Positions 4,997 to 59,297 of a stretch of 64,000 bases of DNA are shown here, in pieces. The stretch comes from Haliotis rufescens (Eukaryota), in contig NW_025964383.1 in NCBI RefSeq assembly GCF_023055435.1, forward strand, positions 10,168,001-10,232,000, read 5' to 3'. Both the position numbers and the translations under genes were made by a program. How positions within the stretch are numbered: the stretch's first letter is position 1; the number at the start of each line of letters is the position of its first letter. The notes below the pieces were generated by a model. It made no database searches. It was given only the letters and a program-made list of their open reading frames with translations, and was not told the DNA's origin.

Positions 4997-6374
4997 ATGA
5001 ACAAACGTATGAAAGTTGGATTTGCTTTCATATTTATTTTGAACATAGCTGTAGGAATTGCAGTTGTTTGTCAAATGGTGTCACGACAAACCAAAAAGCA
5101 ATCACAAGGTCAGCTTACAAAGGAACAAATCGACAATGTAAGTAACAATTTAAGGATGTACTTTTCACTCATAATATTTCACATATATATATTATTAATA
5201 TTCAAAGTGTATATCTATTTGGGAGGACGAAAATGATAAATAGAAGGAATGGATAAAAAGTAACGTACATGTGTCTGGACTGTTGGTCTTTTGTTATTTA
5301 TTCTGCACATCACACTGTTATCCATTCTGACATGTGTTGCAGATATACATGGAACACGTAACAACCATTGCTATGCCCAGTCTTACACGGACAAGTGAGT
5401 TGAATACACCAAAATGAAAAACGAGAAACACGTTCACCAGAATGTTAAACGTTCTGTTGCAATGATAATTGTTTTCATTATAGAGAAAGCTAATTTGGTA
5501 ATAATATTAATGTGAAGATAACATATTTTATTGACACGCTCCCTGTTTGTGTGAAAATATATCTTCAATTTGTTACAGATGTAGAAAAACCGACCATATC
5601 AGCAGAATTCCTCAATTTATTAAAGCCTATAGCCTACTTCCCGGGACTAGACTTTAGTCACACTGATGGTAAACTAACTTCATATTATGAATTAAAAAAT
5701 GAATATAATAAAAACGGTGTAAATAGAGTGTAAATAGAGTATATATATATATCATACAGTATACAGCAAATAAGAACAAATTCAGTCGGATAAGATATTA
5801 CATTAAGATTGACACTGTCAGATATATTTGGAACTTTTCTTTATAATTACTTTCTTAACAAATTACCCCATGGCCAGAACCATTGGATAGTCAGGTTTGT
5901 ACAAATCCATTATTCATATTATCTGTTAATTTTGATATTGATTCTTCAGATAAAACCCTTACAGACACACCATTAAGAAACTGGGTACCTTTTGTCGGAC
6001 CAGAGAGACAACTTTTGTACAACGGGATGAAGTATGAGAATGGCAGCATCACAGTGCCCGCCACTGGAGTATATGCCGTATATAGCCACATCAAGTTTTA
6101 CACAGAAAGAAATAATCATGACGATGCTGAGTCTGATTTTCATCATAGTATAACACGGTACAGTGCACTGAAGCAAAATGGAGAAGCAGTTTTGAGGAAT
6201 GTCATCAGCGAGAACAAAAACAGCATCATTGATGGAGCAAGTCTGGAGTACTCCAGTGATGTTCATGGTTTGGTGCAGCTGGACGCTGGTGATCAGCTGC
6301 TGGTGAAAGTATCAGGGATGAATCCACTGAGACATGACAGGGACTGGCATTATTTTGGAGTATACATGACGTGA
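4997..6374 (+). CDS. TNF superfamily ligand, gene 1 (235 aa); coding exons 4997-5137, 5343-5394, 5579-5668, 5950-6374
   Basis: Exons join in frame via GT..AG (141+52+90+425=708 nt). N-terminal MNKRMKVGFAFIFILNIAVGIAVVC anchor; exon 3 KPIAYF; exon 4 THD motifs TGVYAVYSHIKF, QLDAGDQLLVKV, WHYFGVYMT*. Splice acceptor at 4960-4961 upstream of the ATG implies a non-coding 5' exon. Confidence 0.9.
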
Positions 6375-6386
6375 TGGTTCCCTACT

Positions 6387-6404
6387 GGCAATTTTACAGT
6401 TGTC
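6387..6404 (+). promoter_or_regulatory. Conserved 3'UTR stem-loop (gene 1)
   Basis: GGCAATT-TTAC-AGTTGTC, 12 nt after the stop; homologues follow all seven stops. Confidence 0.6.
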
Positions 6405-8643
6405 GAGGTTAAGGAGGTGTAATGAACATGTGCATGTGATGTATACATTATAAATGGATTCTGGGAATACACGAAAATGGCACATTGATAACAATTTGAA
6501 ACCATCAAGCTTTGTGTCGCAATTAATACCCTGACACAAACACAAATGTGAATAATTGTGTGTGAGTAGTTTGTAAAAAGGCAAGAACAATTAAATTTTG
6601 GTAGTTAATAATGTATTCCGAGGCAAATGATACCTTTAATGTCTGTCTACCAGCGTGTGTGAATACACGTTTGTATGTCAATCTGGCTATGAGCCGACTC
6701 TTTCTTCATACTTCGTCGTTAGATGTCCCTCCTTATTACTTCGTGCCAAGAACATTACATTTTATGTCATTTATATATATTCGACAATATAATACATGCA
6801 TAGTTAGACAGAATATTTCAAATAAATTATTTGTTTAATATAACTTTAGAATATGTCAGCATTGGAAACGAATGTGAAACTTCGGTTTATGAGATTCGAC
6901 AAGTTTGACCATCAGTATGTTACGTAATGTATTTCACAGTTTCTCTACTGTCATCTTAATCAATTAAACATACTTGGTTGATAGAACCTATTACTCCCTT
7001 CATAGTCATTAAGATGCGTTGCACATACCGTTAAATAACTTCCAGTGAACTTTAAGCAACATTTTGAATGTGTAATGTTATACATATGTGTGTTAGAAGA
7101 AGATTATATCTGATTCATATGCATTCAGCATGATTGAAAAATAATTTTTTTGTCGTCCAAACTCGCCAGATAGTTTATAAGATATAGTTAGGAGATTGTG
7201 ATTTTAAACGTGTCTTGTCTTTGGTGTGGACATTGTCTTGGATTAACAACCGTTCCAATTGTTGACGATAATCTTAAACTTTCTTCAAATAAAACATATC
7301 TTCTGTGACAAGGACAGATGTGTGTTTTTATATCTGTTCAACCCTGATCAAGTGTATTACACGGTCGGGTCAGCAACGTTGGATATCTGTTTATAACGTA
7401 CCCGCTACATGGTCAACAATGATACTTTTGATATTGCCGTTTAGGTATTAAGTAACCGTATGTTGCAGTTTTTCAATATATCGCATAATTTAGCGTGACA
7501 CAAAGCCAAAAACATAGCATTTCGGTGTTCGTATGCCAGTCGTTAAGGTCGGATGATAATGAGAAGAGCATACAAGTTTATAGCTGACGTCAACACGCTA
7601 TAGAGTACACTTTCCTGACATAACTATAGACAACTTTAGATACACGTGATCTCATCTTGCAAGAATGGAGTAATTATTGAGGACGTACAGAATAACCTAA
7701 CATGTTCTCCCATCCTGACTCAGTGCCGTTTCCCAAACAAAATGAAAACAGATGTCATTTACATTGTTTGATAGTTGTATCGGATGTATGTACAACTTCA
7801 TAGTTATTAATTTGTACCTGGATTCTGGATGTCAACTAAAGAAACGGAGACACGGTAAAGCAGTGTGTTTCAGATAGAAAGTATTTGTGTTAACGCTGGG
7901 CCAGACCTTAGACTACAAAAGCAAATGTGTAATAACAAGGCGTGACTCCGTGTTTGAGTGGTGATAAGGTGACTGCTGTCGCAGTGTGTTTTCATAAAAT
8001 AACCTTCACATACCCTTGAGTAAATTGATCTTCTCCATTATATTATAACATTTAATGACGTTTTTTCAATACATGAATTAAATTCACAGGTGTATGCATA
8101 TGGAAGATGTTACCAGTGAATGACCAGAAATATTTTCTTTCCGCTTACTTGTGTTGTAGGCGAAGGTAAAAGAGCCCATCAATACAGGTTTTCAACACTG
8201 TTATGCTTTCCTTACATTTCTTTACAAAGGACATCGATTTCACATGACTGTTTATCAATGCGCATGCATAGAGTACGTCCTATAAATACCGAGTAAATTC
8301 TATAGATAGCATATATGTCATCATTCCACGAAAGTGAGACACTGTAAGTGACATCCATATAAGGCAATATTTGTACTCCTGGTGAACATTCAGTCAACAG
8401 GTGTGTTATTCGTTGAGGACGTTGCCAGGATACGCTTCCTGATCACACATGCTGTGAGAGAAGGTGGAATATCTCGAGTACGTAAGTATATAAGACGGCT
8501 ACTCTTAATGAGTATTTATTGAAAAAGTCAGCAATACATATGAAACTATACAGAAACTGGGCAACATTATTCAAGCGTTGTCACGATGACCTAACAAATG
8601 AAAGTCTTGTTTCTATTTAGATACTTTCGGGTAATATACAGTA

Positions 8644-8799
8644 CTGTTTACAAAATAGCCCCTATCTCCATGTATCTACAAACCCCTCTCGTCATTTTTG
8701 ATTGTTTGCACCCTTACAATGCTGTTTACAAAATAGCCCCTATCTCCATGTATCTACAAACCCCTCTCGTCATTTTTGATTGTTTGCACCCTTACAATG
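8644..8799. repeat. 78-bp exact tandem duplication
   Basis: ctgtttacaaaatagcccc...cccttacaatg at 8644 and 8722. Confidence 0.92.
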
Positions 8800-8822
8800 C
8801 ACCGCGTCCACGTCAAGTTGAT

Positions 8823-8877
8823 TGTGACGTCACACCTGGTCCATAACACCTAGCGCTAGTATTCCCGGGGAAGCCCC
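8823..8877 (+). promoter_or_regulatory. Perfect CRE (TGTGACGTCACA, 8823-8834) plus kB-like GGGGAAGCCCC (8867-8877) upstream of gene 2
   Basis: Motif match about 1 kb upstream of the gene 2 ATG. Confidence 0.5.
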
Positions 8878-9830
8878 TGGCCTACCCTTTGTCCAAACCA
8901 CTATCACAATCACTGCATGCATTTTTCTTAAAAAGCAACAACAACAAAGGCAACAAATACACAAAATGATGAGGAACATGAACATACATGTGTAATATAC
9001 TCTGGATTGATAGCAATAATATGTCTAACATACCACAGCATGGTCATGCACGAGAACTATGTTTTGTATTGATTCAATGTATTACTACGCGAGGCCTATT
9101 TATTGTTATCAATGCAAATTCGTCTCGGTCGTGAGCGGACGTGAACGGTATATGTAAGGTTAAGATTATTAATATTAGGAACAGTTGTTGATTAAGTTTG
9201 TCTTACGAAGTATGTTTAATAAGATTCACTTTACTATCTGTACATGTACACAAGTGTGTGTCCAATTGCTGTTTTAATGTAGCTAATAACTAATTTGTGT
9301 GTGAGGGTGTGGGTGCGTGCGTCTGTATGCATGTATGTGTGTATGTAATGTATTCATGCAGCAGTGTGTGTCTGTGTGTGGATGTATGTATGATAGGTAT
9401 AGGGTACACGTTTGTACACGTGCCATATCTGTAAAAACTGTTGTAATGTGTTTGGTATCAAGGATACGTGTCTGGTCAGTCTGTCTGTCTGTCTGTCTGT
9501 CAAGTATATGTTAACCGTTTGTACACATGGCAGATATTGTAGTGCATTTGATGTAAAGGATAAGTGTCTGAAGTATATGTTAACCGTTTGAACACATGGT
9601 AGTTATGTTAAAACTGTTGTAGTGTGTTTGGTGTCAAGGAAGGCACTTCTATACATCATATCGCGCTCAAGATAGTCCACGTACCTGCATTAACAGAGAA
9701 TATAATTACATATTACAATTACATAGATATGCATAAGTGTCTGATAAGTCCTTCGCTTCCCAAAAGTTCGGAATCGGAAATTGATTTCGGCGATATCTAA
9801 TTGTAGTTTGTTTATGCTTCAGACTACAGT

Positions 9831-11674
9831 ATGGAGACGCTTGAGAAAATGTTCTTTGCTTCCATATCTATTTTGAACATAGCTGTAGGAATTGCAGTTA
9901 TTTGTCAAATGGCGCCACGACTGGCTGATCAGCAACCACATTTGCATCCTTCCACCTCCACTCAGAATATGAAGGAAGCAATTGACAAGGTCCGTACAAA
10001 CTTTTAAATATGTTTTCATTCATAACATTTAAAATTAATTATAGTAGTACTAATATACAACTTTTATTCTTGGAAATGATGATATGATATTACTAAATAG
10101 ACGGAATAAAGCGCCCATATATTCTATCATATGGATGGCAGTACATCACATTTTCTTTCAGGTTGCGAAGTGTAAATAATATTTTTAAAACAATAAGTTG
10201 TATATCGGGATATTGATAATATAATGCATGAAAGAATAATATACTTGATCTAAACAACATTTAAATGAGACACACCCCGAAAATGCAAAACGTCAAAACT
10301 CACTGGTATCTCTATTATTGTAGGCATACACGGAATGCCTACGAAAATTGCCAGACAGGAACACAAAGAAAAGTAATGGTAAGTTAAATATATTTTAACA
10401 CCTAGCACGTCATATTTGTACACGTAGCATCCTTTCTATTCCTAGAAATGTTGATGTCCAAATAAGTTATGCAAAATTGCAGTTTTCAATAAAAATCGTA
10501 TTCATTGCACATGTTCCTTATGCATAAGCGCGATTTTACTTTGGTTGGTTGGTTTGGTGTTTAACGCCGGTCTCAGCAATATTCCAGCTATATGACGGCG
10601 GTCTGTAAATAATCAAATCTGGACCAGACAATCCAGTGATCGATATCATCGATCTACGCGATTGGGATCAATGACATGCATCAACCAAGTTATAATTAGC
10701 GAGCCTGACCACCCGATCCCGTTAGTCGCCTCTCACGACAAGCATAGTCGCCTTTTAAGGCAATCAATGGTTGCTGAAGACTTATTCTATCCCGGATTTT
10801 CTATGGAGTTTTAATGTGTTACAGATGTAGGGAGAGAGTACATTCCCCCGCATCTTTACAGCCTACTGAAACCTGATGCATTCTACTCGGGGCTGAACAT
10901 CACTGACCTTGGCAAAGGTAAGGACCTGTCATCATATGATGTTGCACCACATGGGAATACAACGACAGCTAAGTACTGCGTTATAAACACCATATGGTCA
11001 TATGTAATACTTTCCTGTCAATTCGTTCTCACTGCTGACATCACACATTGGTCGAAGGAAATTGATCTCAGGAACAAATAAACAATTACCATGTTTTATC
11101 GGCTATACGTATCGTGTAAAACACGAAAGGTGGTTTATAGCTTTACATCGCCTACGTTTTTGGAATCTTATTTACGTTTTACAGATTCAAATTCATTCAC
11201 AAAAAAATAGGTATGTGCTAAATTTAAATTAATTCTTCAGAGCACCCCTATAAACTCACTCCTGCCAGAGGATGGGCCGCACAAACTATGGTCGGGCAAG
11301 AGAGACAAGTCTTGTACAACGGAATGCAGTATGAGAACGGGAGCATCATAGTCCCTGCAGCCGGTGTTTATGTCGTGTACAGCCATGTTACATTTAACAC
11401 TGAAGCATATCGTCACGATGACAAAGAGACTGACTTCTATCACCTCATAGTCCGCTATAATGCGGAGAAACAAGAGGAGAATATCGCACTTAAGAACGTA
11501 GTTATCGAGAATAGCTATGGGATGAGATTGATTGACGGGGATGGCTTGTTATCTAGTGACATCCGTGGAATACTGGAGCTCAATGCTGGGGATCAACTTC
11601 GTGTTGACTTATCAGGAGTATCGAAATTAAGCTCTGTTACGGATTGGTTTTACTTTGGCGTTTACATGATCTGA
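9831..11674 (+). CDS. TNF superfamily ligand, gene 2 (246 aa, most divergent); coding exons 9831-9989, 10324-10378, 10825-10917, 11241-11674
   Basis: METLEKMFFASISILNIAVGIAVIC; exon 3 LLKPDAFYSGL; exon 4 AGVYVVYSHVTF ... LELNAGDQLRV ... WFYFGVYMI*. 159+55+93+434=741 nt in frame. First donor GTCCGT is weak. Confidence 0.87.
10540..10800 (-). mobile_element. SINE/LINE-tail repeat family D in gene 2 intron 2
   Basis: tttaacgcc..ctcagcaatattccagctatatgacggcggtctgtaaataatc; related copies at 19515-19670 (-), 20058-20170 (-) and 27655-27807 (+). Confidence 0.7.
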
Positions 11675-14259: not shown

Positions 14260-14536
14260 NNNNNNNNNNNNNNNNNNNNNNNNNNNNNNNNNNNNNNNNN
14301 NNNNNNNNNNNNNNNNNNNNNNNNNNNNNNNNNNNNNNNNNNNNNNNNNNNNNNNNNNNNNNNNNNNNNNNNNNNNNNNNNNNNNNNNNNNNNNNNNNNN
14401 NNNNNNNNNNNNNNNNNNNNNNNNNNNNNNNNNNNNNNNNNNNNNNNNNNNNNNNNNNNNNNNNNNNNNNNNNNNNNNNNNNNNNNNNNNNNNNNNNNNN
14501 NNNNNNNNNNNNNNNNNNNNNNNNNNNNNNNNNNNN
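14260..14536. other. Assembly gap (277 N) next to a (CT/CA)n microsatellite at 14537-14692
   Basis: Run of N. Confidence 1.
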
Positions 14537-16887: not shown

Positions 16888-19379
16888 ATGCAAGCGACGA
16901 AAGCAGTCGTCGCTGCTGTGCTCGTCCTTAACATAGCTGTTGGAATCGCAGTTATTTGTGTTGTGGTGACTGTCGAGGAGGAACACCACAGGCCCCCTGC
17001 TGCAACACTCTGGAACAATGCCGAGCAGTTGAAGAAGCAGATCGACGAAGTACTAATTTTAAATGAAATTAATTAACTGAAACCCGCTCACAACTGTCAG
17101 TCGTAAATGCTATATTGTAGGCTGCACTGAACATTGTGCTGCAAACGTATGACTAAATAAATTTAACACGTATGAACATCTATATCCTTTAAAAGTATGT
17201 ATGTCCGTTAGTTGATCGTTCACATAAAACGATATCTGAAAAAAATAGATTAAAGATCACCATGTATCACCATCGATAGTAGGTGCTTCTCTAGGAGTTC
17301 ACATGTACGTATCCAATTCAGCATGCTATTTAAATATTTCCTCTTCCAAACAAAGAAAGAGTATCTCAATATTTACACTGGTCATTGCAGATTTATGTTG
17401 ATCCTCGGGAGACTCCGCATCACCCCCGAGGTAAGTGGGTTTTCCTGTGCTAGAGACATACACATTTTACTTAAAATCCATCTCAAACTCAATACATATA
17501 AACATGATGAAATATATATTAACAAAATGTGTTCCCTCTCTGCCATCGTTCACATGGCTTTACATATTGTGCCAACACGTTTATATAATGTAAATGGTAT
17601 AATTTGGCTAGTGTCGCCTAGTGTGCTATAATATATGTTTACATTCATACAGATCCACAAGCCATTACGTCACTAGATTATTGGAATATTCTGAAGCCCA
17701 TCGCATTTCTGACCGGACTTGACTTTGGCGAAAACAACGAAGGTAAACATGTTCTCATCTCATCTGCAGCATATGTTTCAAATCAGTTCAACATCGTTTT
17801 GTTGTAGGACAGTCACCGGTGTACGTTACCAGTGTACCATTCGAACCTTGTGTATGTGATTTCTTAATGTAAGCATTTATTATTAATATAACTGTTGTAT
17901 AACGTGTTAGACGGGCAATGGAAATGCGACTGAATCAGGAAATATTTCGAGGCGGTTACGAGTTTGCGTAGGGAAATAGTATCACAACCTTGAAATAACG
18001 AGTTTAGACAAGTCATACGTCAACAACGAACTTTTCTTGTCGGGAGGACCTAGCAATCAAATTTCAGTTCACGTCACCGCCACATGACGTACAAATTAAT
18101 GTAACACATGGACGTTTAATTAGAGACCCATGTTACAGTCTCAGAAAATAATTGAGTTCAGCTCTGTCCATTTTTTGGCAAATGTGTACACCACTATACC
18201 CAGTGAAAAAGTTCAGAAAAAAACTTCTTCATCCATGGGGCATTTGTCACTACAAACGTGGAGATGGGTGTAAAATGAAAGCAAATGTCATCTGAAGTTT
18301 ACTGAGAACTGTACTTAATAATATTTATGTGAAGTTTGGGGGATATGATATATTTCCAAGAAGTATGCATGAAGTTTTCAATAGTGAACCCATTCTCGCT
18401 GAAATATTCCATCAGCTTTTACCAACATCTTCCCGTTTTTGAAGTTTAACTATTACTTGAATTTCCTTTGGAGAAGGATGCGCTCACATGCGATAGTGAT
18501 TCATAAACACATGCCAATGATATACTCGGAATCATTCAATGGACTCTCCTTTCGGCAGCTATTTCTTACGAATATGGAAAGGGTTTTCCGGCGTTTGATT
18601 ATTTATGTGTATATGAATACATGCAGGAGGGATATCATATGATTGTTGAAATCATGTTCTGTCGATTCATGTTGGTAGTAACACGAACTCGTAACATTAT
18701 AACGGAGAATCAAACCCTTAATAGGGAATCGGAGTTATTGCATGGTTGACATCAAAGGAAATATGCCACTTCCATGCTACAAATGTGACTTACCAAGGAT
18801 TGGTTCAAAACAGTGTGATTATAATCTGAATGTAGATTTTCAGTCATATAATCCATATAGGCATAACTGAAATCATATCACACATGTATGAATATAGTTT
18901 GTGCATGATCACTTACTCTATGATATAGACATATATGTACCTGTGTTTTCTTGACAGATACGCCTACAAACACTGCAATAAGGAACTGGATACCGTTTGT
19001 TGGCCCAGGCAGACAGTACTTGTACAATGGTATGACATACGAAAACGGAAGTGTTTCTATCCCAACCGCTGGAGTGTATGTCGTCTATTCCCATGTAAAA
19101 TTTTACACAGAAAAAAATCATCGCGTTGATCCCGAGCTTGATTTTCATCACAGCATAACACGATACAATGCTGTGTCTCAACAGACAGAGACTGTATCGG
19201 GGAACATAGTGTGTGAGAACAAGAACAATGTCATTGACGGAGCAAGTCTGGAATACTCCAGTGACATCCACAGTTTGGTGCAGCTGAATGCTGGAGACCT
19301 GGTCATAGTAAATGTGTCGCATTTGGAACTGTTAAAGTCGGACAAGGATTGGCATTATTTTGGAGCATATATTATTTGA
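16888..19379 (+). CDS. TNF superfamily ligand, gene 3 (237 aa); coding exons 16888-17049, 17391-17430, 17653-17742, 18958-19379
   Basis: MQATKAVVAAVLVLNIAVGIAVIC; IYVDPRETPHHPR; ILKPIAFLTGLDF; THD ending WHYFGAYII*. 162+40+90+422=714 nt in frame. Confidence 0.9.
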
Positions 19380-29406: not shown

Positions 29407-29643
29407 ATGGAAAGGATTGGGAAAGTTGGGTGTGCATCACTTCTTCTCTTGAATATAGCAGTAGGCATTGCAGTTATCTGCAGTGTAGCATCCAGTAAAC
29501 ACGGTACGCAGATTAGTAACACAGAAGGTCTGAAGCAACAAATCAGCAAGGTAAGCAGAAATATTGATCTTAATTTTTAAATTTCAGAGTATACTACCTG
29601 TAATGTTTTACTGAATTTGATTATACTGGATAATAAAAATAAA

Positions 29644-29692
<49 letters not shown>

Positions 29693-30787
29693 GTACTTTT
29701 ATCATGTTCATATTATTGTTGCTGATTTTCAGAATACCATAATTTATACAATTTGTTAGGTGTGTAATCATTTTACAGATATACGAAGACCGATTGAAAA
29801 TAATAATCGATAATGATAATGGTACTCATGAACGGAAAGGTAAGTGGATGAAACCAAAATAATTCTTCTTAAATAATCTGCTTTACCAAAGCAATAATTC
29901 AGCTGTAATAATTGTCTTAAGACTGCTTGGTAAATACACATGTTAAAGGTTTTGGTAACTTCGTATGCATTGATGCAGAAAATAATGCAAAAAATGCAGT
30001 TGAATGATTTGTTTTGATCATGGCTCTACTATGTCAATTGCGTGTGTTATAAGGCAATGTTTAAATCTGATACAGGTGCAAGGCAACCGAGCACGTCAGT
30101 GGCATTCTTGAACCTGCTGAAACCTATAGCATATCTTACTGGACTGGACTTCCTTGGGCACATTGGTAAGATAACCAGCTCACTTTTGTTGGGTCAAATA
30201 AGTACTATTTACTGTACTGAGGAAAAAACACACATATTTTGATGTAATTATTCTCACACAATCGATCTGCGTTGCGTTCTTCTTCAGATTTGTGTGCATA
30301 TGTATTGTTTATCCTAACCAATAATGCATGTTTCTGTGACCAATAATACATGGTCTTAATTTCAGAGAATGTAAATGACACATCTATAAAAACATGGGTG
30401 CCGTTTGTTGGACCAGGGAGACAACTCTTGTATAACGAGATGCGGTATGAAAATGGCAGCATTATAATCCCCGCCACGGGTGTGTATGCTGTATACAGCC
30501 ATGTCAAGTTCTACACAGAAAGGAATCGTCGTGGAGATACAGAAACTAATTTCCACCATTCCATAATGCGATACAATGCATTAAAACAGACGAATAAAAC
30601 TGCACTTGCTGACGCAGTGTCTGAGAATAAAAACGACATCATTGACGGCGCTAGCCTGGAATACTCCAGTAACATCCATGGACTCCTGCAACTCAATGCT
30701 GGTGATCAGTTGGTTGTTAAAGTATCAAGGATAAACCCACTGAGGCATGACAGAGACTGGCATTACTTTGGTGTATATATGATTTAA
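29407..30787 (+). CDS. TNF superfamily ligand, gene 4 (238 aa); coding exons 29407-29550, 29779-29839, 30076-30165, 30366-30787
   Basis: MERIGKVGCASLLLLNIAVGIAVIC; LLKPIAYLTGLDF; THD ending WHYFGVYMI*. 144+61+90+422=717 nt in frame with canonical GTAAG donors. Confidence 0.92.
29630..29689. repeat. (AAT)n microsatellite in gene 4 intron 1
   Basis: Read directly from the sequence. Confidence 0.95.
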
Positions 30788-32326: not shown

Positions 32327-34752
32327 TGATCATCGCCTGTCCGTGTATACCGTCAGATCTTATAATCGCCTGTCCGTGTATACCGTCAGGTCTGATCATC
32401 GCCTGTCCGTGTACACCGTCAGATCTTATAATCGCCTGTCCGTGTATACCGTCAGGTCTGATCATCGCCTGTCCGTGTATACCGTCAGATCTTATAATCG
32501 CCTGTCCGAGTATACCTTGAGGCTCGATCATCGCCTGCCCGAGTACACCGATGGGTATGATCATCGCCTGTTCGAGTATACCGCCATGTCTGATCATCGC
32601 CTGATCGAGTATACCGTTAGGTCTGATCATTGCCTGTTCGAGTATACCGCCATGTCTGGTCATCCTGTGTCCGAGTATACCGTCAGGTCCGATCATCGCC
32701 TGTCCGAGTATACCTTCAGGTCCGATCATCGACTCTCCGAGTATAGCGCAAGATCTGATCATCGCCTGTTCGAGTGTACCGCCAGGTCTGATCATCGCCT
32801 GTTCGAGTATACCGCCAGATCTAATCATCGCCTGTTTGAGAATACCGTCAGGTCTGATCATCGCCTGTCCGAGTATACCGTTAGGTCTGCTCATCGCCTG
32901 TTCGAGTTTACCGCCAGGTCTGATCATCGCCTGTCCGAGTATACCGTTAGGTCTGATCATCGCCTGTTCGAGTATACCGCCAGGTCTGGTCATCGTGTGT
33001 CCGAGTATACCGTCAGGTCCGATCATCACCTGTCCGAGTATACCGTCAGGTCCGGACATCGACTCTCCGAGTATACCGCCAGATCTGATCATCGGTTGTC
33101 CGAGTATACCGTCAGGTCCGGACATCGACTCTCCGAGTATAACGCCAGGTCTGGTCATCGGTTGTCCGAGTATACCGTTAGGTCTGCTCATCGCCTGTTC
33201 GAGTATACCGCCAGGTCTGATCATCGCCTGTCCTAGTATACCGCCAGGTCTGATCATCGCCTGTTCGAGTATACCGTTAGGTCTGATCATCGCCTGTTCG
33301 AGTATACCGCCAGGTCTGATCATCGCCTGTCCGAGTATACCGTTAGGTCTGATCATCGCCTGTTCGAGTATACCGCCATGTCTGGTCATCCTGTGTCCGA
33401 GTATACCGTCAGGTCCGATCATCGCCTGTCCGAGTATACCTTCAGGTCCGATCATCGCCTGTTCGAGTATACCGCCAGGTCTGATCATCGCCTGTCCGAG
33501 TATAGCGCAAGATCTGATCATCGGTTGTCCGAGTATACCGCCAGGTCTGGTCATTGGTTGTCCGAGTATACAGCCAGGTCTGATCAACGCCTCTCCGAGT
33601 GTACCGTCAGATCTGATCATCGGTTGTCCGATCATACAGCCAGGTCTGCTCATCGCCTGTCTGAGTATACCGCCAGGTCCGATCATCGCCTGTCCGAGTA
33701 TTCCGCCAGGTCTGATTATCGCTTGTCCGATAATACCGTCAGATCTGATCATCGCCTCTCCGAGTATACCGTCAGGTCTGGTCATTGTCTGTTCGAGTGT
33801 ACCGCCAGGTCTGGTCATCGGTTGTCCGAGTATACCGTCAGGTCTGGTCATTGTCTGTTCGAGTGTACCGCCAGGTCTGGTCATCGGTTGTCCGAGTATA
33901 CCGTCAGGTCTGGTCATTGTCTGTTCGAGTGTACCGCCAGGTCTGGTCATCGGTTGTCCGAGTATACCGCCAGGTCTGATCATCGCCTGTCCGAGTATAC
34001 GGTCAGGTCCGATCATCGGTTGTCGGAGTATACCGCCAGGTCTGATCATCGCCTGTCCGAGTATACCGCCAGGTCTGATCATCGGTTGTCCAAGTATACC
34101 GTTAGGTCTGATCATCGCCTATCCGAGTATACGGTCAGGTCCGATCATCGGTTGTCGGAGTATACCGCCAGGTCTAATCATCGCCTGTCCGAGTATACGG
34201 TCAGGTCCGATCATCGGTTGTCGGAGTATACCGCCAGGTCTGATCATCGCCTGTCCGAATATACCGCCAGGTCTGATCATCGCCTGTCCGAGTATACCGC
34301 CAGGTCTAGTCATCGTTTGTCCGAGTATACCGCCAGGTCTTATCATCACCTGTCCGTGCATACCGCCAGGTCTGATCATCGGTTGTCCAAGTGTACCACC
34401 AGGACCGATCATTTCCTATCCGAGTATGCCGCCAGGTCTGATCATCGCCTGTCCGAGTACACCGCCAGGTCTGGTCATTGCATGTCCGAGTATACCGCCA
34501 GGTCTGGTCATCGGTTGTCCGAGTATATCGCCAGGTCTGATCATCGCTTGTTCTCTGCCTATGTGCCTGGTCTTATCATCACCTGTCCGAGTATACCGCC
34601 AGGTCTGGTCATCGGTTGTCCGAGTATACCGCCAGGTCTGGTCATCGGTTGTCCGAGTATACCGCCAGGTCTGATCATCGCCTGTCCGAGTACACCGCCA
34701 GGTCTGGTCATTGCCTGTCCGAGTATACCGCCAGGTCTGATCATCGCTTGTT
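32327..34752. repeat. 33-bp CpG-rich minisatellite, array 1 (~73 units)
   Basis: Consensus CCGAGTATACCG[CT]CAGGTCTGATCATCGCCTGT. Confidence 0.95.
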
Positions 34753-36634: not shown

Positions 36635-36723
36635 TGTGTTTCAGAATTGGATAGCAACAAAAGTCGCCAAGTGTCAATCAAGGAAAGGGATGTGAAAGCT
36701 GTGTGTGCGTCACTTCTTTTGAA
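36635..36723 (+). pseudogene. Relic of the first coding exon of a gene 4/5/7-type TNF ligand
   Basis: tgtgtttcag|aattggatagcaacaaaag...gtcaatcAAGgaaagggatgtgaaagctgtgtgtgcgtcacttctt aligns to the gene 4/5 acceptor, 5'UTR and N-terminus. ATG is mutated to AAG and homology stops before LNIAVG. Confidence 0.75.
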
Positions 36724-41337: not shown

Positions 41338-42696
41338 ATGAAAAGGATTGTGAAAGCTGTGTGTTCATCACTTCTTGTGTTGAATATAGCAGTAGGCATT
41401 GCAGTTATTTGCCATGTGTTATCCAGTATTCACGATACAGGGATGAGTAACACAGGAAGTTTGAAACAAGAAATAAGCAAGGTAAGCAGACATTGACCTT
41501 GTCATTTAAATTCCAGAGTACAATACCTGTAATATTAGATTTGATTTGATAACACTATTAAGTAATTGTCTACTTTTGTTCATATTAGTGTTGCAGATTG
41601 TCATTGTGTAAACTAATGTATTTGTCTAATCATGTTACAGATATATGAAGAACGAGTGCAATTAATGAACGATAATGATTATGATGATCATAAACGGAAA
41701 GGTGAGTAGATGAAATAATAAACAATGTCTTAAAATCTGCTTCATCCCAAATAAAGATTCAGCTGTAACAACTTTCAAGTTTGCATTATAAATAAACATG
41801 TTAAAGGTCATGATAACAACGTACGCAGTGAAAGCTGACACAAATAAGCCGTTTAAGCCATATACAATAAAATGTAGAAATGTTGTTGAATGATTCGTTT
41901 TGATCATGATGCTACGATGAAAAGTTTGTGTGATATAAAGCTATGTTTAAAACTGATACAGGTGCAAGGCAACCGAGCTCGTCAGTAGCATTCCTGAACC
42001 TACTGAAACCTGTAGCATATTTCCCTGGACTTGAGTTCCGTGGACACATTGGTAAGATATCAAACTAACTTTCATTGAGTCAAATGTACACTTATATCAT
42101 TCCCTGTATTGTTGTAACGTATTAGGGGATGTGTTTTCCTTACACGATCTTGAGACGTTGCGTTCCCCTTCAGATGTGTTTGTCCACGTTTTGTTTATCT
42201 CGCTGTAATTAATGTCTAACAAGCAATGATTCCATCAATAATGCATGTCCCTATGAACAACTTTTTTTCAGGAAGGAAAGACAATGACACACCGATAAGA
42301 ACATGGGTGCCGTTTGTTGGTCCGGGGAGACGACTCTTGTATAACGGGATGCGGTATGAGCATGGCAGCATCATAATCCCCGCCACGGGTGTGTATGTTG
42401 TATACAGCCATGTTAAGTTCTACACAGAAAGGAATCGTCGGGGAGATACAGAAACTGATTTCCACCATTCCATAATGCGATACAATGCACTAGAACAGAC
42501 GAGTACAACTGCACTTGCTGACGCAGTGTCTGAGAATAAAAACGACATCATTGACGGCGCTAGCCTGGAATACTCCAGTGACATCCATGGACTTCTGCAA
42601 CTCAATGCTGGGGATCAGTTGGTTGTTAAAGTATCAAGGATAAACCCATTAAGGCATGACAGAGACTGGCATTACTTTGGTGTATATATGATTTAA
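41338..42696 (+). CDS. TNF superfamily ligand, gene 5 (239 aa); coding exons 41338-41481, 41641-41701, 41962-42051, 42272-42696
   Basis: MKRIVKAVCSSLLVLNIAVGIAVIC; LLKPVAYFPGLEF; THD ending WHYFGVYMI*. 144+61+90+425=720 nt in frame. Confidence 0.92.
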
Positions 42697-45846: not shown

Positions 45847-46324
45847 TGATCATCGCCTGTCCGTGTATACCGTCAGATCTTATAATCGCCTGCCCGAGTA
45901 CACCGATGGGTATGATCATCGCCTGTCCGAGTATACCGTCAGGTCTGATCATCGCTTCTCCGAGTGTACCGCCAGGTCTGATCATCGCCTGTCCGTGTAT
46001 ACCGTCAGATCTTATAATCGCCTGTCCGAGTATACCGATGGGTATGATCATCGCCTGTCCGAGTATACCGTCAGGTCTGATCATCGCTTCTCCGAGTGTA
46101 CCGCCAGGTCTGATCATCGCCTGTCCGAGTGTATACCCTCAGATCTTTTAATCGCCTGTCCGAGTATACCACCAAGTCTGGTCATCGGTTGTCCGAGTAT
46201 ACAGCCAGGTCTGGTCATTGCCTGTCCGAGTATACCGACAGGTCTGGTCATCGGTTGTCCAAGTATACCGCCAGGTCGAATCATCGGTTGTCCAAGCATA
46301 CCGCCAGGACTGATCATTGCTTGT
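45847..46324. repeat. 33-bp minisatellite, array 2 (~14 units)
   Basis: Same unit and the same 5' and 3' flanks as array 1. Confidence 0.95.
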
Positions 46325-46913: not shown

Positions 46914-46976
46914 TCAAATTATAATATATGCTCCAAAATAATGCCAAGCCTTTTCAGGCTTTAACAGTTCCAAATG
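46914..46976 (-). pseudogene. Duplicated THD C-terminal fragment HLELLKPEKAWHYFGAYIII*
   Basis: Minus-strand translation matches the last ~20 residues of genes 3/6. It lies ~300 bp downstream of the gene 6 stop. Confidence 0.8.
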
Positions 46977-47249
46977 TTCAAGTTTAAATATCGGACATCT
47001 AAATGTATAGAACAACTTCATTTCAGGTTTGTGACCCCAGTTTGCAAACATAACAAAAAAATCGAATTGGCATTTTCAAGTGTGTCAGTATATATATTCA
47101 TGTCTGTGAAAATATACATTGGTTCCATATTTATTCATGTACGCATCTTAAAGCATTAGGCATCATACGTAATTTGAATTTCATTTCAAACCTTGACACA
47201 TCTAAATGCACTACGGAATATACACCATTTGAATTTATTTTAAAACGTT

Positions 47250-47280: not shown

Positions 47281-48881
47281 TTAAATCATATAGACTCCAA
47301 AATAATGCCAATCCTTGTCAGGCTTTAACAGTTCCAAATGCGACACATTTACTATCACCTGGTCTCCAGCATTCAGCTGCACCAAACTGTGGATGTCACT
47401 GGAGTATTCCAGACTTGCTCCGTCAATGACATTGTTCTTGTTCTCACACACGATGTTCCCCGATACAGTCTCTGTCTGTTGCGACACAGCATTGTATCGT
47501 GTTATGCTGTGATGGAAATCGAGCTCGGGATCAACGCGATGATTTTTTTCTGTGTAAAATTTTACATGGGAATAGACGACATACACTCCAGCGGTTGGGA
47601 TTGAAACACTTCCGTTTTCATACTCCATGTTCTTGTGCAAGTATTGCACTGATCCAACGAAATCTATCCAATTCCGTACTGCAGTGTTTGTAGGTGTATC
47701 TGTAAAACAGAAGTAGAGGAGTGACAAAAACATAGAAATATATGTGCGATACGATTGCATTCATGGGTATGTTGGCTTTCTCAGGAAAACGAATATTTGT
47801 TTTGTTATCACTTTCACTTTATTTCGAACAAATCGCTGATCAGTGTGTATCAAGGGGTGGGGCCTCCAATACCTCGTTTAAGGGGCGGGGTTACTACAAT
47901 ATAAGTTACTACAAGTCCAGCTCTCTGCACCACAAAATACTTTCTTATATACGTTGACTGACGAGAGCAATGTGACTGACATGAAGTATCGAATATCTGC
48001 CCCTCGAAATATCTCGTGATGCGCTCGTTATCCAATTCACCAATTAACACTTTTTTCCAGTAATGATAAATTCTTATTCCGCACTGTTAGAGATAACAGG
48101 GTTCGACTCTATCATGAAATCTTATTAAAATGGTAATATTGTTTGATTGATACATTTGATATCCGGTAACACTAGTACTGTTAACATACAACTGCCCTGC
48201 AACAAAACGAAGCTGGAGGTATTTGAAATATATGCTGATAAGATGAGAAGATCATACCTTCGTCGTTTTCGCCGAAGTTAAGTCCTGTCAGAAATGCGAT
48301 GGGTTTCAGAGTATTCCGATATTCTAGTGACGTGGTCTGTTGTTCACCTGTATTAATTTAAATTCATGACAGCAGATCACCATTTATGCAATGCTTCGCA
48401 TGGTGGTAATATGTATACATTCTTATGACAAAGGAAGAAATAATTGTTTTCGGACTTCATATATCAGAAGCACTCCCCTACCCTACTCTACACAGATATC
48501 TATGCGGTCAGCATAGTACCTCTGTCACAGGCCAGCGCCATGTTATGATTTATCACATCTTACGCAGTCCATTCAAAATACAGCGTACTTTTTCATTTTT
48601 GACAATTCTGAACATGTTGCTAAACATATGTGATCGAATGGTTATCTTTCACTAAGTAAATATTCCTTAACGTGAAAAAACATTTCCATTTGCATAGTTT
48701 ACATTTGCTGAAGGACTCCACGTGCTGTCATGGAAGCCCAACGGAGAAATAGCTGTACGACCGTTTTGATGCATAAAGATAAATTGTTATGAACCTGGCT
48801 GTCGAAGTTGTAGAAGCATATCTATATAATTATGCAAAACAATATGTAAAGAGGGTTAACTTCTTTATTATGTTGCCACGG

Positions 48882-48915
<34 letters not shown>

Positions 48916-49714
48916 TCTCTGCCTCATAGCATTTTTCACCTAATGAAGGAGTATGTTTTTACTCCGACGAGTTGTGTTCTTCATAATACAGAAGTTAACA
49001 TCCATAATTTGTCTTCGTGTGTATCACTATCAAAGACTTAATATGTAAAGTGCATCGAAATGCTTGCAAAAGACCAGTCTCTTCGCATTTCAGGATATAC
49101 GCGTCTGTTTACAAACAAGATAAAAGCATGGTCACGTGATACTAGTATAAACATTATGTGACAGTGGTGTAATCGGTGATTTAAGAACATTCAATGGAAA
49201 CCGAGCGAAACGTGTAATTCTACAACACAAGAAAACCTACTTACCACGGGGATGGTGCAGAGTCTGTTGATGATCATCATAAATCTGCAATGACCAGTAA
49301 TATAGTTTATGTTCTATTTTATTGTTAGAATAGTAAATGACATGCTTAATTAGTTACAAACATGTGTAGTCCCAGAGATGTTCCAAAAACTCGATGATGA
49401 TATATGACCAACAAAGAGATCTACAGACTATTGCATATTTTTTTCTGTCCATATTTATCCACTTGATTGATGTAAGTTCGTACATTTTTCACTGCAACCT
49501 GTACTATATATTTTCTACTGACAATAGAAAACAAGTTGATTTGGATGGTCAAAAAGTTAATTTCATTTCATATTCGTACTTCGTCGATCTGCTTCTTCAA
49601 CTCCTCGGCAGTGTTCCAGAGTGTTGCAGCAGTTGCCACAACACAAATCACTGCGATTCCAACAGCTATGTTAAGGACGAGCACAGCAGCGACGACTGCT
49701 TTCGTCGGTTGCAT
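47281..49714 (-). CDS. TNF superfamily ligand, gene 6 (227 aa, inverted paralog of gene 3); coding exons 49714-49580, 49284-49245, 48347-48258, 47699-47281
   Basis: MQPTKAVVAAVLVLNIAVGIAVIC; IYDDHQQTLHHPR; TLKPIAFLTGLNF; THD ending WHYFGVYMI*. 135+40+90+419=684 nt in frame on the minus strand. Confidence 0.9.
48853..49030. mobile_element. Decayed Penelope-like remnant in gene 6 intron 2
   Basis: Inverted pair gttaacttctttattatg / cataatacagaagttaac around (TA)n; degenerate core CTAATGA-AGGAGTA..TACTCC-GACGA. Confidence 0.4.
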
Positions 49715-54155: not shown

Positions 54156-55496
54156 ATTGTATATATGTTCCTGTTATTGTCCGGGAGGAACATTTTACAG
54201 GATAAAGTAAGAAAATCAAGTATCTGTTAAACCTGCACTTTATGCGCTTCTTTACACGCTTATGCTTGCCATTACGTTATGTGTAAAAGGATTTTGTGTA
54301 AATAACTTCCATGCGCTCGGAGCGGTTGTGTACTTGTAGCCTGATGATAAATCGTTCGCCAGTCATGCCCAAAACACAGGTTCGATTCCCAACATGGGTA
54401 AAATGTGTGTATGTGTGTGTGCATTGCTGGTGTTCCTCGACGTGATGTTGGTGAACGATTGCTGGAAGAGGCATACAAAACACATTCCCTCACTACATAC
54501 TGTACTTGTTTCCATATTTGCGTATTTTTGCAAAGCGTTATCTTCATATAATGAAACGTATGTTTTATGATTCACATTGCTGAACTTGATTTTACCTGCG
54601 CACTGCTACTTAACGCATTACACCAATCAGTAAGATTCGATAATTTTCCTCAGTGTTCAAGATATACCCCCAGCGTGTATTTGCACCGAATACTGCAGTT
54701 AATCTCCAGTAATTGGAGTAAACATGGCGCATGATGTTTGCAGGGTAACATGCGCTTTGAATGGCGTTAGATTACAGCACACTGCATTCTCTGCTTGAGT
54801 GTTGTGAAAGGCAATCTATTTATAGACATTCCGGATGGAAAAACCAACTGAGCAAACACTACTATTTATAGGCATCGGGCATTTACACCGTGAAGATCGA
54901 GAATAGATCCATATATATAAAATCCTTTTGCATTGTCACTTCTGTAAATGATGTGAATCCAGTAACAGGACTGGTGAGTACTAATTCCATATTCATTATT
55001 GTTTTATTTATTTGACTTTACAGGGTAATTTAATAGTTACTCTGACTGTCAACCAAATAGTTGTCAAGCTGAAATTGGTATGCATTTCATCGTTGCATAT
55101 ATATTACGTTATGCTCTCCAATTAGCAGTTCAAGATTATGTCATACATATTTAGTTTTCTATTTAAATTAATTTCATCATAATGGTATGATGGTCTATTT
55201 ACTGTGTTGTTGGAATGCCAATTCCTTGATGATGCTCATTGTAACCGATAGTCAAGATGATACTTTTTTTTAAATATGTACTTAGAAAATCCATCATATG
55301 TAGAAGAAAATAGTCTTGATCGAAGTTTGATTAAGGTGGGCTATATCTACATTTCGTCATCTATAATTATCTTGAGTTATACTCTGGGATACTTGGACAT
55401 GCATTGTGTATTACATATTGCGATGAGTTATCATACCATTATACGTAAATACCGTTTTACATGAAGACTTCTACGAGGATGAGGTTGTACTCGCAC

Positions 55497-56788
55497 ATTA
55501 CATGTGTTATCTCGGGACAGATGGAGCGGATTGGTGCTTGTACATGTAGCTTACTTGTGTAGTATGTAGTTGTATGGTATGTCTATTACAAGCATATTAC
55601 ATGTGTTATCTCGGGACAGATGGAGCGGATTGGTGCTTGTACATGTAGCTTACTTGTGTAGTATGTAGTTGTATGGTATGTCTATTACAAGCATATTACA
55701 TGTGTTATCTCGGGACAGATGGAGCGGACTGGTGCTTGTATATGTAGCTTACTTGTGTAGTATATAGTTGTATGGTATGTCTATTACAAGCACATTACAT
55801 GTGTTATCACGGGACAGATGGAGCGGATTGGTGCTTGTACATGTAGCTTACTTGTGTAGTATATAGTTGTATGGTATGTCTATTACAAGCATATTACATG
55901 TGTTATCTCGTGACAGATGGAGCGGACTGGTGCTTGTACATGTAGCTTACTTGTGTAGTATATAGTTGTATGGTATGTCTATTACAAGCATATTACATGT
56001 GTTATCTCGGGACAGATGGAGCGGACTGGTGCTTGTACATGTAGCTTACTTGTGTAGTATATAGTTGTATGGTATGTCTATTACAAGCATATTACATGTG
56101 TTATCTCGTGACAGATGGAGCGGACTGGTGCTTGTACATGTAGCTTACTTGTGTAGTATGTAGTTGTATGGTATGTCTATTACAAGCACATTACATGTGT
56201 TATCTCGGGACAGATGGAGCGGACTGGTGCTTGTACATGTAGCTTACTTGTGTAGTATATAGTTGTATGGTATGTCTATTACAAGCATATTACATGTGTT
56301 ATCTCGGGACAGATGGAGCGGACTGGTGCTTGTACATGTAGCTTACTTGTGTAGTATATAGTTGTATTGTATGTCTATTACAAGCATATTACATGTGTTA
56401 TCTCGGGACAGATGGAGCGGATTGGTGCTTGTACATGTAGCTTACTTGTGTAGTATGTAGTTGTATGGTATGTCTATTACAAGCATATTACATGTGTTAT
56501 CTCGGGACAGATGGAGCGGACTGGTGCTTGTACATGTAGCTTACTTGTGTAGTATGTAGTTGTACGGTATGTCTATTACAAGCACATTACATGTGTTATC
56601 TCGGGACAGATAGAGCGGACTGGTGCTTGTACATGTAGCTTACTTGTGTAGTATGTAGTTATATGGTATGTCTATTACAAGCACATTACATGTGTTATCT
56701 CGGGACAGATAGAGCGGACTGGTGCTTGTACATGTAGCTTACTTGTGTAGTTAATAGTTGTATGGTATGTCTATTACAAGCATATTAC
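55497..56788. repeat. 99-bp tandem repeat, 13 copies
   Basis: catgtgttatc recurs at 55501, 55600, 55699 ... 56689. Confidence 0.95.
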
Positions 56789-57765
56789 CAACAGACGGAT
56801 GTCGTTACCCACAGATTACCTTCAAATTATCAGAGGTACATATATACGCAATGTATATTTTTTGTTTGTTGGATTGGTGCTTATGGGGAATGGATGAATG
56901 CAGATGGCTTTTATTTTATCTGGGAACGGATGGGTGCAAGTAGCTGACATATTCATTGATATGGAGTCATTTTGCGATGAAAAAATTGTTCACTCCAATC
57001 AACCGGGAACGAATGCTGGTGGATGGTGGCATGTTTACTTCACAAAAAGGATTATTGCAAGATGTTAATGAGGAATATATTAAGGCTCATAGTTATAATG
57101 TAACAAGAAAGAATATATGTGGTTTTACAGCTGTAATTGAAAAAGGTAATCTCCATACATAATCCCAGGCCTCTACAGGATATCAATAGTCGGTCCCTAA
57201 GTAGATTACCTGTATCTTATATATAATGTGATGATTGGTAAATGTAACTTATATATTCAATATCTAGCAGAAGATGGACATGTTACATTATACGTATATG
57301 TCTGCAAGAGCTGGGTGAATACATGAAAGTTACATGTATATTATATATGTCCATATTGACGATTAATTTTATCTGGAAGAGGGTAGGAGGGTAACTATGT
57401 TATTACAATGATTTGAAGGGACGCATGTGGATGAGGGAGGCGTGTCAGATTAGTGTGAGAGAAGAGACAGATGTGATGATTTACATTGTATTAACACGTA
57501 ATCATGACAAACTAAGAAACAAATGTGGAACTTGAACCAACATCCATACATTAACCCTGCACAGCGAATAACGGCACCTTAAACAAATGTCCCATGTAGT
57601 TAATTTTAATGATCTATAATATCATATGACATTCGGGTTGTAGAACGTATCATGCAACTCCAGCGCCTTAGACCGCTGGCCAACGTATGTTCCTGACTTT
57701 TAACATAATAATACGCCATTTTGCGTTCCAGATTTGGGCAGCATCGAAAAGACTGAGAGTCATTC

Positions 57766-59297
57766 ATGGCAAAGATTGACCTGGTTGTGTGTGCGTCACT
57801 TCTTCTTTTGAACATTGCAGTAGGCATTACGGTTATTTGCCTTGTTGTATCCAGAAAGCACGACACGCAGATAAGTAACACAGAAAACTTGAAGCAAGAA
57901 ATCAGCAAGGTAAGCTGAAACATTGAGTTTGATTTATAAATTTTAGAGTACAAAAACCTTGAATGTTTTGTTATACCGTAAGCGTCTTATTTTGTAAGTG
58001 TTCATACTATTGTTGCACATTGTCAGCACACCGTGGATTATTCCATTTATAAACTAATATATGTATGTTTACTAATCATTTTTCAGATTTATGAAGGACT
58101 AAAAATAACGAACGGTCATGATGATGATGGTGATCATGAACAGAAAGGTGAGAAAGAATCTGATCAAATAGTAACAATTCTTGCCACATCAAAAACAACC
58201 ATCCAGCTGTACCTGTCAAGTTTGTATTGGAACTAAACATGTAAAAGGTTTTGGTAATATCGTAAGCAGTTACAGATGAACAAAATAACCTGTTCCAATA
58301 CAGTCAACTACGGTTATAACGAACACCCGTATAACGAACTGACGGATATAACGAACTTACTTTTTTGGTCCCGACCATTTGCTGTAGTTATGCTGTATAT
58401 ATGCTTATTACGAACTACGGTTATAACGAACTGAGTCCCCTTGAGTTCGTTATAACCGTAGTTTAATGTATGTAGAAATGTCTTTGATAGATTTGTTTTG
58501 ATCATGAGTTTGCGATGTCAAGTGCGTGTGTTTTTAGACCATGTTTAAAACTGATACAGGTGCAAGGCAACCGAGCTCATCAGCAGCATTCCTGAACCTA
58601 CTGAAACCTGTAGCACATTTCCCTGGACTTGAGTTCCGTGGACTCAATGGTAAGATATCTAACTAACTTTTGTTCAGTCAAATGTACAAGTATATTATTT
58701 ACTGTATTGATGTAAAGTATTAGGTGATGTATTTTCCTTACACGATCTTGAGACGTTGCGTGCCCCTTCAGATGTGTGTGTCCACGTTTTGTTTATCTCG
58801 CTGTAATTAATAACTAACAAGCAATGATTCCACCAATATGAATATGTCCCTATGAATAACTTTTAATTTCAGGAACGACAAGAAATGACACACCAATAAG
58901 AACATGGGTGCCGTTTGTTGGACCAGGGAGACGACTCTTGTATAACGGGATGCGGTATGAAAATGGCAGCATCATAATCCCCGCCACGGGTGTGTATGCT
59001 GTATACAGCCATGTCAAGTTCTACACAGAAAGGAATCGTCGGGGAGATAACGAAACTGATTTCCACCATTCAATAATGAGATACAATGCACTAAAACATA
59101 CGAATAAAACTGCACTTGCTGACGCAGTGTCTGAGAATAAAAACGACATCATTGACGGCGCTAGCCTGGAATACTCCAGTGACATCGATGGACTTCTGCA
59201 ACTCAATGCTGGGGATCAGTTGGTTGTTAAAGTATCAAAGATAAAACCACTGAGGCATGACAGAGACTGGCACTACTTTGGTGTATATATGATTTAA
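57766..59297 (+). CDS. TNF superfamily ligand, gene 7 (239 aa); coding exons 57766-57909, 58087-58147, 58560-58649, 58873-59297
   Basis: MAKIDLVVCASLLLLNIAVGITVIC; LLKPVAHFPGLEF (compare KPVAHV of vertebrate TNF); THD ending WHYFGVYMI*. 144+61+90+425=720 nt in frame. Confidence 0.92.
58301..58468. mobile_element. Same MITE family, independent insertion in gene 7 intron 2
   Basis: TA|CAGTCAACTACGGTTATAACGAAC...GTTCGTTATAACCGTAGTTTAATG|TA; absent from the equivalent intron of genes 4 and 5. Confidence 0.8.

Follow-up and report, generated by a model that had tools for sequence, protein, structure and literature searches.

The genome of the red abalone, Haliotis rufescens, carries seven intact genes for tumor necrosis factor (TNF) superfamily ligands within a stretch of 64,000 nucleotides, referred to here as the window (contig C605:10,168,001-10,232,000 of the RefSeq assembly, which comprises 1.33 Gb in 615 contigs). 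The seven genes are bona fide TNF superfamily (TNFSF) ligands. Very probably, the window represents the distal half of a cluster of TNFSF ligand genes that encode type II proteins, that arose by duplication and that work as cytokines. The locus is a real one that looks functional. Its annotation exists already and the kind of event is familiar; only the scale of the family is mildly new.

The genes were recognized by seven open reading frames (ORFs) of 128-163 aa, all but one of them on the plus strand, which correspond to C-terminal TNF homology domains (THDs). When the window was searched by tblastn with these ORFs, the matches were the seven ORFs themselves and one 22-residue fragment only. 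The exons were mapped by homology: annotated Haliotis proteins, retrieved with the last exon of gene 5, were placed on the window and yielded four collinear blocks per gene. GT/GC..AG boundaries were tried around each block and the joined peptide was scored against the best reference; exon 2 of gene 5 was placed by translation. All seven genes consist of four exons (135-162, 40-61, 90-93 and 419-434 nt), with GT..AG introns chosen in phases 0, 1 and 1, and all seven joined models run from an ATG to a stop codon without internal stop (227-246 aa). Each of them is identical, over its full length and at 100%, to an existing H. rufescens RefSeq protein. A first-pass annotation, made from the DNA letters, had proposed seven stop-free four-exon genes sharing their intron phases; splice mapping, joined frames and RefSeq identity bear this out, and the observation of seven intact TNF ligand genes is confirmed. 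It had also asked whether the locus was known, and this is the case: all seven genes are in RefSeq and the ortholog of gene 7, AbTNF-alpha of Haliotis discus discus, was published in 2009. The genes are as follows, with the score of each last exon against the Pfam TNF profile, PF00229.

4997..6374, plus strand: gene 1, exons 4997-5137, 5343-5394, 5579-5668 and 5950-6374; 235 aa; PF00229 56.8 bits; identical to XP_046345194.2 (P0013), LOC124125860, uncharacterized.
9831..11674, plus strand: gene 2, the most divergent, exons 9831-9989, 10324-10378, 10825-10917 and 11241-11674; 246 aa; PF00229 58.2 bits; identical to XP_048246537.1 (P0024), LOC124122759.
16888..19379, plus strand: gene 3, exons 16888-17049, 17391-17430, 17653-17742 and 18958-19379; 237 aa; PF00229 57 bits; identical to XP_046345284.2 (P0025), LOC124125928.
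29407..30787, plus strand: gene 4, exons 29407-29550, 29779-29839, 30076-30165 and 30366-30787; 238 aa; PF00229 57.5 bits; identical to XP_046341832.2 (P0026), 'tumor necrosis factor-like'.
41338..42696, plus strand: gene 5, exons 41338-41481, 41641-41701, 41962-42051 and 42272-42696; 239 aa; PF00229 55.4 bits; identical to XP_048247379.1 (P0027), 'tumor necrosis factor-like'.
47281..49714, minus strand: gene 6, inverted, exons 49714-49580, 49284-49245, 48347-48258 and 47699-47281; 227 aa; PF00229 58.8 bits; identical to XP_046341824.2 (P0021), LOC124122750.
57766..59297, plus strand: gene 7, the counterpart of AbTNF-alpha, exons 57766-57909, 58087-58147, 58560-58649 and 58873-59297; 239 aa; PF00229 59 bits; identical to XP_046345282.2 (P0004), TNF-like.

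Gene 6, on the minus strand, faces gene 5 tail-to-tail and gene 7 head-to-head, and forms an inverted repeat with gene 3. The tandem array of the first-pass annotation therefore stands as an array of seven genes but, with gene 6 on the minus strand, it is not purely head-to-tail, and it extends beyond the window. The vertebrate TNF and LTA genes have four exons, the last of which encodes the greater part of the THD, a layout that the abalone genes recall. Exon 3 of every gene (e.g., 41962-42051 in gene 5) is 90-93 nt long and flanked by phase 1 introns on both sides, so that its skipping preserves the frame. Isoform X2 of the closest H. cracherodii relative of gene 5 lacks exactly the 30 residues of exon 3 (P0002 vs P0001), and several H. 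rufescens paralogs are annotated with 205-aa X2 isoforms that are likewise of the exon-3 type.

The assignment to the TNF family was verified with PF00229 on exon 4, and full-length analyses used the public proteins that proved identical to our models. All seven last exons matched PF00229 well above the cut-off of 23 bits (55.4-59 bits), over profile positions 9/11-127 of 127, in agreement with the family proposed at first sight. The C1q family (PF00386) was tried and rejected: only gene 6 matched, below threshold (17.2 vs 23.7 bits), and the proteins have a type II anchor instead of the signal peptide and collagen stalk of C1q architecture. The type II topology was found in all seven, with a Kyte-Doolittle 19-residue maximum of 2.35-2.96 at residues ~7-28, and the hydrophobic anchor, which is nearly invariant, contains the sequence LNIAVGI(A/T)V. 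The layout common to the seven proteins is a cytoplasmic tip of 6-9 residues, the anchor, a variable stalk of ~45 residues and a jelly-roll THD of ~160 residues at the C-terminus. The AlphaFold2 (AF2) model of gene 7, computed from an 84-row alignment, has a mean confidence (pLDDT) of 85.4; it comprises a helix at residues 2-56, a stalk of low confidence and a ten-strand beta domain mostly above 90. When this model was compared to the PDB with Foldseek, mouse and human TNF-alpha came first, followed by TL1A, RANKL, LIGHT and FasL (top matches 2tnf, 7kpa, 2o0o, 3urf and 4en0; target-normalised TM score 0.79-0.85, E ~1e-11, identity 18-24%). The predicted jelly-roll of gene 7, the protein that was modelled, can thus be superposed on solved TNFSF ligands, and a phmmer search of PDB sequences also returned TNF as best match (4e-7). 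In genes 4, 5 and 7 an RNRRGD motif (30521-30538 in gene 4, and equivalents in the other two) maps to a loop that is predicted to lie at the surface, flanked by two long strands (gene 7 residues 154-160, pLDDT >90).

TNFSF ligands act as trimers. Three copies of gene 7 residues 76-239 were modelled together, with controls. The predicted homotrimer passed these controls, with an interface score (ipSAE) of 0.76 against 0.44 for the best control; in the calibration of this score, 21 of 30 proteins whose solved structure is a same-chain pair attained the mark, against 0 of 23 whose solved structure is a single chain. The trimer runs had at least 51% of their contacts in common and a partner pLDDT of at least 72. 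The model yields 46 predicted contact positions, and exon 3 holds, together with beta-strand A, the predicted contacts 84, 86 and 88. The core residues of the predicted interface are invariant in all seven proteins (V139, Y143, H145, L197, S200, S201, W231, Y233, G235 and Y237, in gene 7 numbering). The first-pass annotation had raised the possibility that the paralogs form mixed trimers, like LT-alpha/LT-beta, and so provide a combinatorial ligand code matched to diversified receptors. We regard this as unlikely. The invariant core of the interface is in keeping with it, as are the 85% of predicted interface positions that are identical within genes {4,5,7} and the adjacency of the genes, which makes co-regulation possible; however, across the seven genes, conservation of the predicted interface does not exceed that of the remaining THD (30% vs 37% invariant positions, Fisher p=0.47). 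Nor do the receptors point to a matched diversification: the TNFR cysteine-rich domain, PF00020, has at least 17 matches in the genome, at least ~12 loci, against ~70 loci with a THD. On the preferred reading, that of duplicated, working cytokines, the proteins would form trimers, either at the cell surface or once shed from their stalk, and the trimers would bind cysteine-rich TNFR-type receptors; receptor binding would drive NF-kB, MAPK or apoptotic responses in haemocytes and epithelia during infection and stress.

This role, most likely that of membrane-bound or shed trimeric cytokines in immune or stress signalling, is drawn from what is known of the TNF superfamily and from data on AbTNF-alpha and on oysters. 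AbTNF-alpha (ACF75368.1 / B5ANH5) is the first molluscan TNF to have been reported (De Zoysa, Jung & Lee 2009). Two later works, citing De Zoysa 2009, state that it is up-regulated in gill upon pathogen exposure (PMC9128277; bioRxiv 10.1101/2024.07.27.603686). Gene 7 is 92.9% identical to AbTNF-alpha (P0028) over 239 aa and falls in the same 90% cluster, whereas genes 4 and 5 are 79-82% and genes 1, 2, 3 and 6 only 46-62% identical to it; type II topology and THD are common to AbTNF-alpha and all window proteins. Gene 7 is closer to AbTNF-alpha than to genes 4 and 5 (81-82%), and it clusters in the tree with AbTNF-alpha (P0028) and the H. cracherodii protein P0003, orthology with AbTNF-alpha being found for gene 7 only. 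AbTNF-alpha was described as a single cDNA; here, its counterpart is one of 7 genes in the window, of 15 in the cluster and of 18 in the subfamily. With vertebrate TNFSF members (TNF-alpha, LT-alpha, FasL, RANKL, LIGHT, TL1A) the abalone proteins share the Pfam family, the predicted fold of gene 7 and the conserved motifs GVYxVYSHV of strand C and WHYFGVY of strand H. However, sequence identity to these members is about 20-24%, one-to-one orthology to a vertebrate member cannot be claimed and the cytoplasmic tail of the abalone proteins is almost absent. In the oyster Crassostrea gigas, TNFs are lineage-specific and tandemly duplicated with high intra-taxon homology (Zhang et al. 2015, PMC4346834), and the copies respond to biotic and abiotic stress (PMC4346834). 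The oyster TNFs occur 'in clusters of three or in pairs' and their total is comparable to that of human (PMC4346834), whereas the abalone cluster counts 15 genes.

The seven proteins fall into the groups {1}, {2}, {3,6} and {4,5,7}, as first proposed and as reproduced by pairwise protein identities: whole-protein identity is 87% between genes 3 and 6 and 81-82% among genes 4, 5 and 7, while gene 1 is 49-61% and gene 2 44-49% identical to the others. Self-alignment of the gene regions gave 80% for genes 4 and 5, 76-83% for genes 4 and 7, 91% for genes 5 and 7 (3' half only) and 75-89% for the inverted pair of genes 3 and 6. The divergence among the seven copies is 9-50%, and no pair is more than 97% identical even in the conserved 360-nt core of the THD. 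In the family tree, each of the seven genes pairs with a distinct protein of H. cracherodii. This points to one-to-one orthologs of all seven, which are likely present in that species, and indicates that the duplications are older than the split of these species. For the THD, the ratio of nonsynonymous to synonymous divergence (dN/dS, Nei-Gojobori) ranges over 0.25-0.49 for pairs of the same group and over 0.09-0.26 for pairs of different groups; for the stalk it is 0.4-1.0. With a THD ratio well below 1, all copies are under purifying selection, with a freer stalk; there was no sign of positive selection, the whole-domain ratio being below 1 in all pairwise comparisons. Taken together, the divergence of the copies, their H. 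cracherodii partners and the THD ratios indicate that these are real, constrained paralogs and not assembly artefacts.

That some or all copies could be produced by the assembly, as haplotigs or as collapsed or expanded repeats, nevertheless deserved attention. Elsewhere in the same assembly, on contig C168, THD exons recur at 97-99.7% nucleotide identity (3.5-4.96 Mb), and a further set of C168 copies (6.72-6.96 Mb) matches gene 1 and the relatives upstream of it at 97-98% identity. A gap is also present inside the array:

14260..14536, no strand: assembly gap (N), intergenic, between gene 2 and gene 3.

For the window genes, however, this explanation is scarcely credible and can be considered effectively refuted. 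No pair exceeds 97% identity in the THD core, introns of window copies are 52-73% identical (two tracts excepted), the proteins are 44-87% identical, each gene has its own closest H. cracherodii protein, and the gap is intergenic. Long reads showing haplotype artefacts had been named at the outset as one of the observations that would overturn the array; by sequence comparison the copies are diverged and have separate partners in another species. The gap lies 2.6 kb 3' of the gene 2 stop codon (11674) and 2.35 kb 5' of the gene 3 ATG (16888), and is bordered on the right by a CA/CT microsatellite. Similarity searches of the window found no exon-like match near it, and none of the seven models therefore needs continuity across the gap. 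The length of the gap is an estimate, and it may conceal a further copy. The C168 near-copies themselves are either a very recent segmental duplication or assembly redundancy, which affects the family count; at C168:3.51-4.96 Mb, on a scaffold of 8.98 Mb, THD-exon triplets recur about every 0.3 Mb at 97-99.7% nucleotide identity.

Transcription was assessed with RNA contigs mapped to positions 4900-10899 only, a stretch that covers all of gene 1 and gene 2 up to its third exon. They came from four runs of four studies with four organism codes; that the runs are RNA was a guess, but the contigs behaved like RNA. Gene 1 is clearly transcribed and spliced in the four studies. The joint of intron 1 (5137/5343, GT..AG) was found in three runs, and that of intron 3 (5668/5950) in two runs, plus three with a few variant letters at the acceptor; for intron 2, a single run, whose letters diverge, shows the donor (5394), and direct evidence does not extend to the acceptor (5579). 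Depth is zero in intron 3 vs 94-474 in exon 4. Coverage runs on to ~7100-7300, which suggests a 3' untranslated region (UTR) of 0.7-0.9 kb. Thus, among the junctions predicted in the first pass, RNA joints support introns 1 and 3 of gene 1, the support extending as far as the stretch examined.

These data bear on the idea that most copies are redundant or decaying and that only gene 7, the ortholog of AbTNF-alpha, works as a cytokine. The relaxed dN/dS of the stalk agrees with it, and so do the long branch of gene 2 (0.55 in the THD-exon tree), which is barely covered by RNA contigs, and two dead fragments that attest to decay in the cluster. However, seven of seven frames are intact, the THD ratio stays well below 1 throughout the comparisons, H. 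cracherodii has kept a likely ortholog of each gene intact, and four studies show transcription and splicing of gene 1, a gene other than the AbTNF-alpha ortholog. We therefore consider it very unlikely that gene 7 is the sole working copy. Several points do weigh against the view that all seven are working cytokines: four of the seven proteins carry only the RefSeq name 'uncharacterized protein'; the proposed immune role is transferred from the 93%-identical ortholog and from oysters; the predicted trimer may have passed its controls because many TNFSF trimers have been solved; gene 2 is thinly covered by RNA contigs; and direct splice evidence is that of gene 1, the transcription of genes 3-7 resting on RefSeq models.

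The fragments and the repeats that accompany the genes are:

36635..36721, plus strand: relic 1, 87 nt, 45 nt of 5' UTR and the first 13 codons of a gene 4/5/7-type exon 1.
46921..46991, minus strand: relic 2, 71 nt, the last 22 codons of a gene 3/6-type exon 4.
32327..34751, no strand: 33-nt minisatellite, 73 copies, 3' of gene 4.
45847-46324, no strand: 33-nt minisatellite, 14 copies, 3' of gene 5.
60364-61637, no strand: 33-nt minisatellite, 39 copies, 3' of gene 7.

Relic 1 is 83.5% identical over 85 nt to the start of gene 4 (29362-29445); its start codon has become AAG, and 14 codons further on there is a TGA. Relic 2 is 91-93% identical over 56 nt to gene 3/6-type exons 4 and lies 290 nt 3' of the stop codon of gene 6, on the same strand. 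The first-pass annotation had placed relics at 36635 and 46914: both are present, as tiny fragments rather than whole pseudogenes. The 33-nt arrays are found 1.5-3.1 kb 3' of genes 4, 5 and 7, where they yield long spurious ORFs in several frames, and the presence of sister arrays behind these three genes indicates that the minisatellite belonged to the duplicated unit.

The identity between copies is patchy. Exon 4 is 94% identical in every pair of genes 4, 5 and 7, whereas most introns there are 56-73% identical; high-identity tracts occur in intron 3 of genes 5 and 7 (90%) and in the 3' flank of genes 4 and 5 (93%). In comparisons with gene 7, synonymous divergence is 0.10-0.18 in the THD vs 0.4-0.6 in the 5' parts. 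This mosaic, in which tracts of high identity stand against diverged introns and synonymous divergence is uneven, agrees with gene conversion or unequal crossover in addition to a birth-and-death process. Birth and death, the mode suggested by the first-pass annotation, is supported by the dead fragments and by differences between the two species: H. rufescens has extra gene 1-type copies (P0029, P0031), and the H. cracherodii proteins P0006 and P0011 have no H. rufescens counterpart in the sample compared. A purely birth-and-death process does not agree with the conversion-like tracts. We propose that units made of a gene and a 33-nt minisatellite were duplicated locally, both directly and in inverted orientation, to give the copies, that these duplications preceded the divergence of the North-Pacific abalones, and that patchy gene conversion and the decay of partial copies came afterwards.

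The cluster to which the window belongs counts 15 THD exons over ~263 kb (C605:9,976,219-10,239,796) of a 49.5-Mb contig, the window being its distal half, with seven genes. Seven upstream genes, at C605:9,976,219-10,153,436, have four exons and are of two alternating types, P0015-like and gene 1-like. At the nucleotide level, gene 1 and the P0015-type gene located at 9.976 Mb are 97.5% identical in their THD exons, and the near-interchangeable THD exons of the two upstream types suggest exon-level conversion. In a tree of 67 THD exons, the seven window genes, the seven upstream C605 genes and four C168 genes form a clade of 18 with a support of 96/89, whose sister comprises a cluster of 10 genes on contig C556 and a divergent copy that lies directly outside the window. 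Another clade, with 30 exons, is made of the clusters at C605:13.8-13.98 Mb and C168:3.5-4.96 Mb. When gene 7 was compared with 1.84 billion cluster representatives, 77 proteins were found at E<=1e-3 and 4 at E<=1e-30, so few that the subfamily is essentially confined to Haliotis. With the 18-exon clade, these four representatives substantiate the lineage-specific cluster proposed at first sight.

Genome-wide, PF00229 gave 82 matches at ~70 loci; 73 THD exons were retrieved, and merging those at least 97% identical left 51 groups. A few large clusters, the present one of 15 genes among them, hold these loci. A survey of 148 invertebrate proteomes reports a maximum of 27 TNFSF members in molluscs (bioRxiv 10.1101/2024.07.27.603686), and the ~70 abalone THD loci exceed any mollusc count found in the literature. 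Our literature searches found no publication on a TNF cluster or expansion in abalone, or on its scale. It is possible, but we put it forward with less than even confidence, that the TNF-ligand repertoire of the red abalone is larger than that of any animal known so far. If this were true, a system so rich in ligands and poor in receptors would call for promiscuous receptors, for mixed trimers or for roles that do not depend on receptors.

Abalone, which are both farmed and endangered, suffer from bacterial (withering syndrome, Vibrio) and viral (HaHV-1) disease, and studies in abalone use TNF as a single-gene immune marker. If 'abalone TNF' stands for 18 close paralogs and ~70 family members, quantitative PCR primers and the assignment of RNA-seq reads are ambiguous. 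The discovery is a modest one, as the genes were annotated already and tandem TNF expansion is known in molluscs; the cluster widens the known scale of this expansion and offers a compact natural series on the diversification of an invertebrate cytokine family.

Other long ORFs of the window were considered as genes and rejected, being translated minisatellites or opposite-strand noise; a Pfam search of them gave nothing credible except a Tc1/mariner helix-turn-helix (HTH) fragment. This 177-aa ORF (39172-39705, minus strand), with a transposase HTH (PF01498, 32.8 bits; PF02796, 31.5 bits), is a transposon fragment of Tc1/mariner type situated between relic 1 and gene 5. A 99-nt tandem repeat with 13 copies and 97% matches (55493-56788) precedes gene 7 by 1 kb, and a 38-nt array of 27 copies (62982-63997) is found at the window end. 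Intron 2 of gene 2 contains, at 10500-10899, a very high-copy interspersed repeat with a summed RNA-contig depth of ~1e5-6e5. A separate repeat family occurs at 52-399, 21873-22105, 40820-41052 and 60045-60213; a weak tRNA-like head at 236-307 (RF00005, 30.6 bits) suggests that it is a tRNA-derived short interspersed nuclear element.

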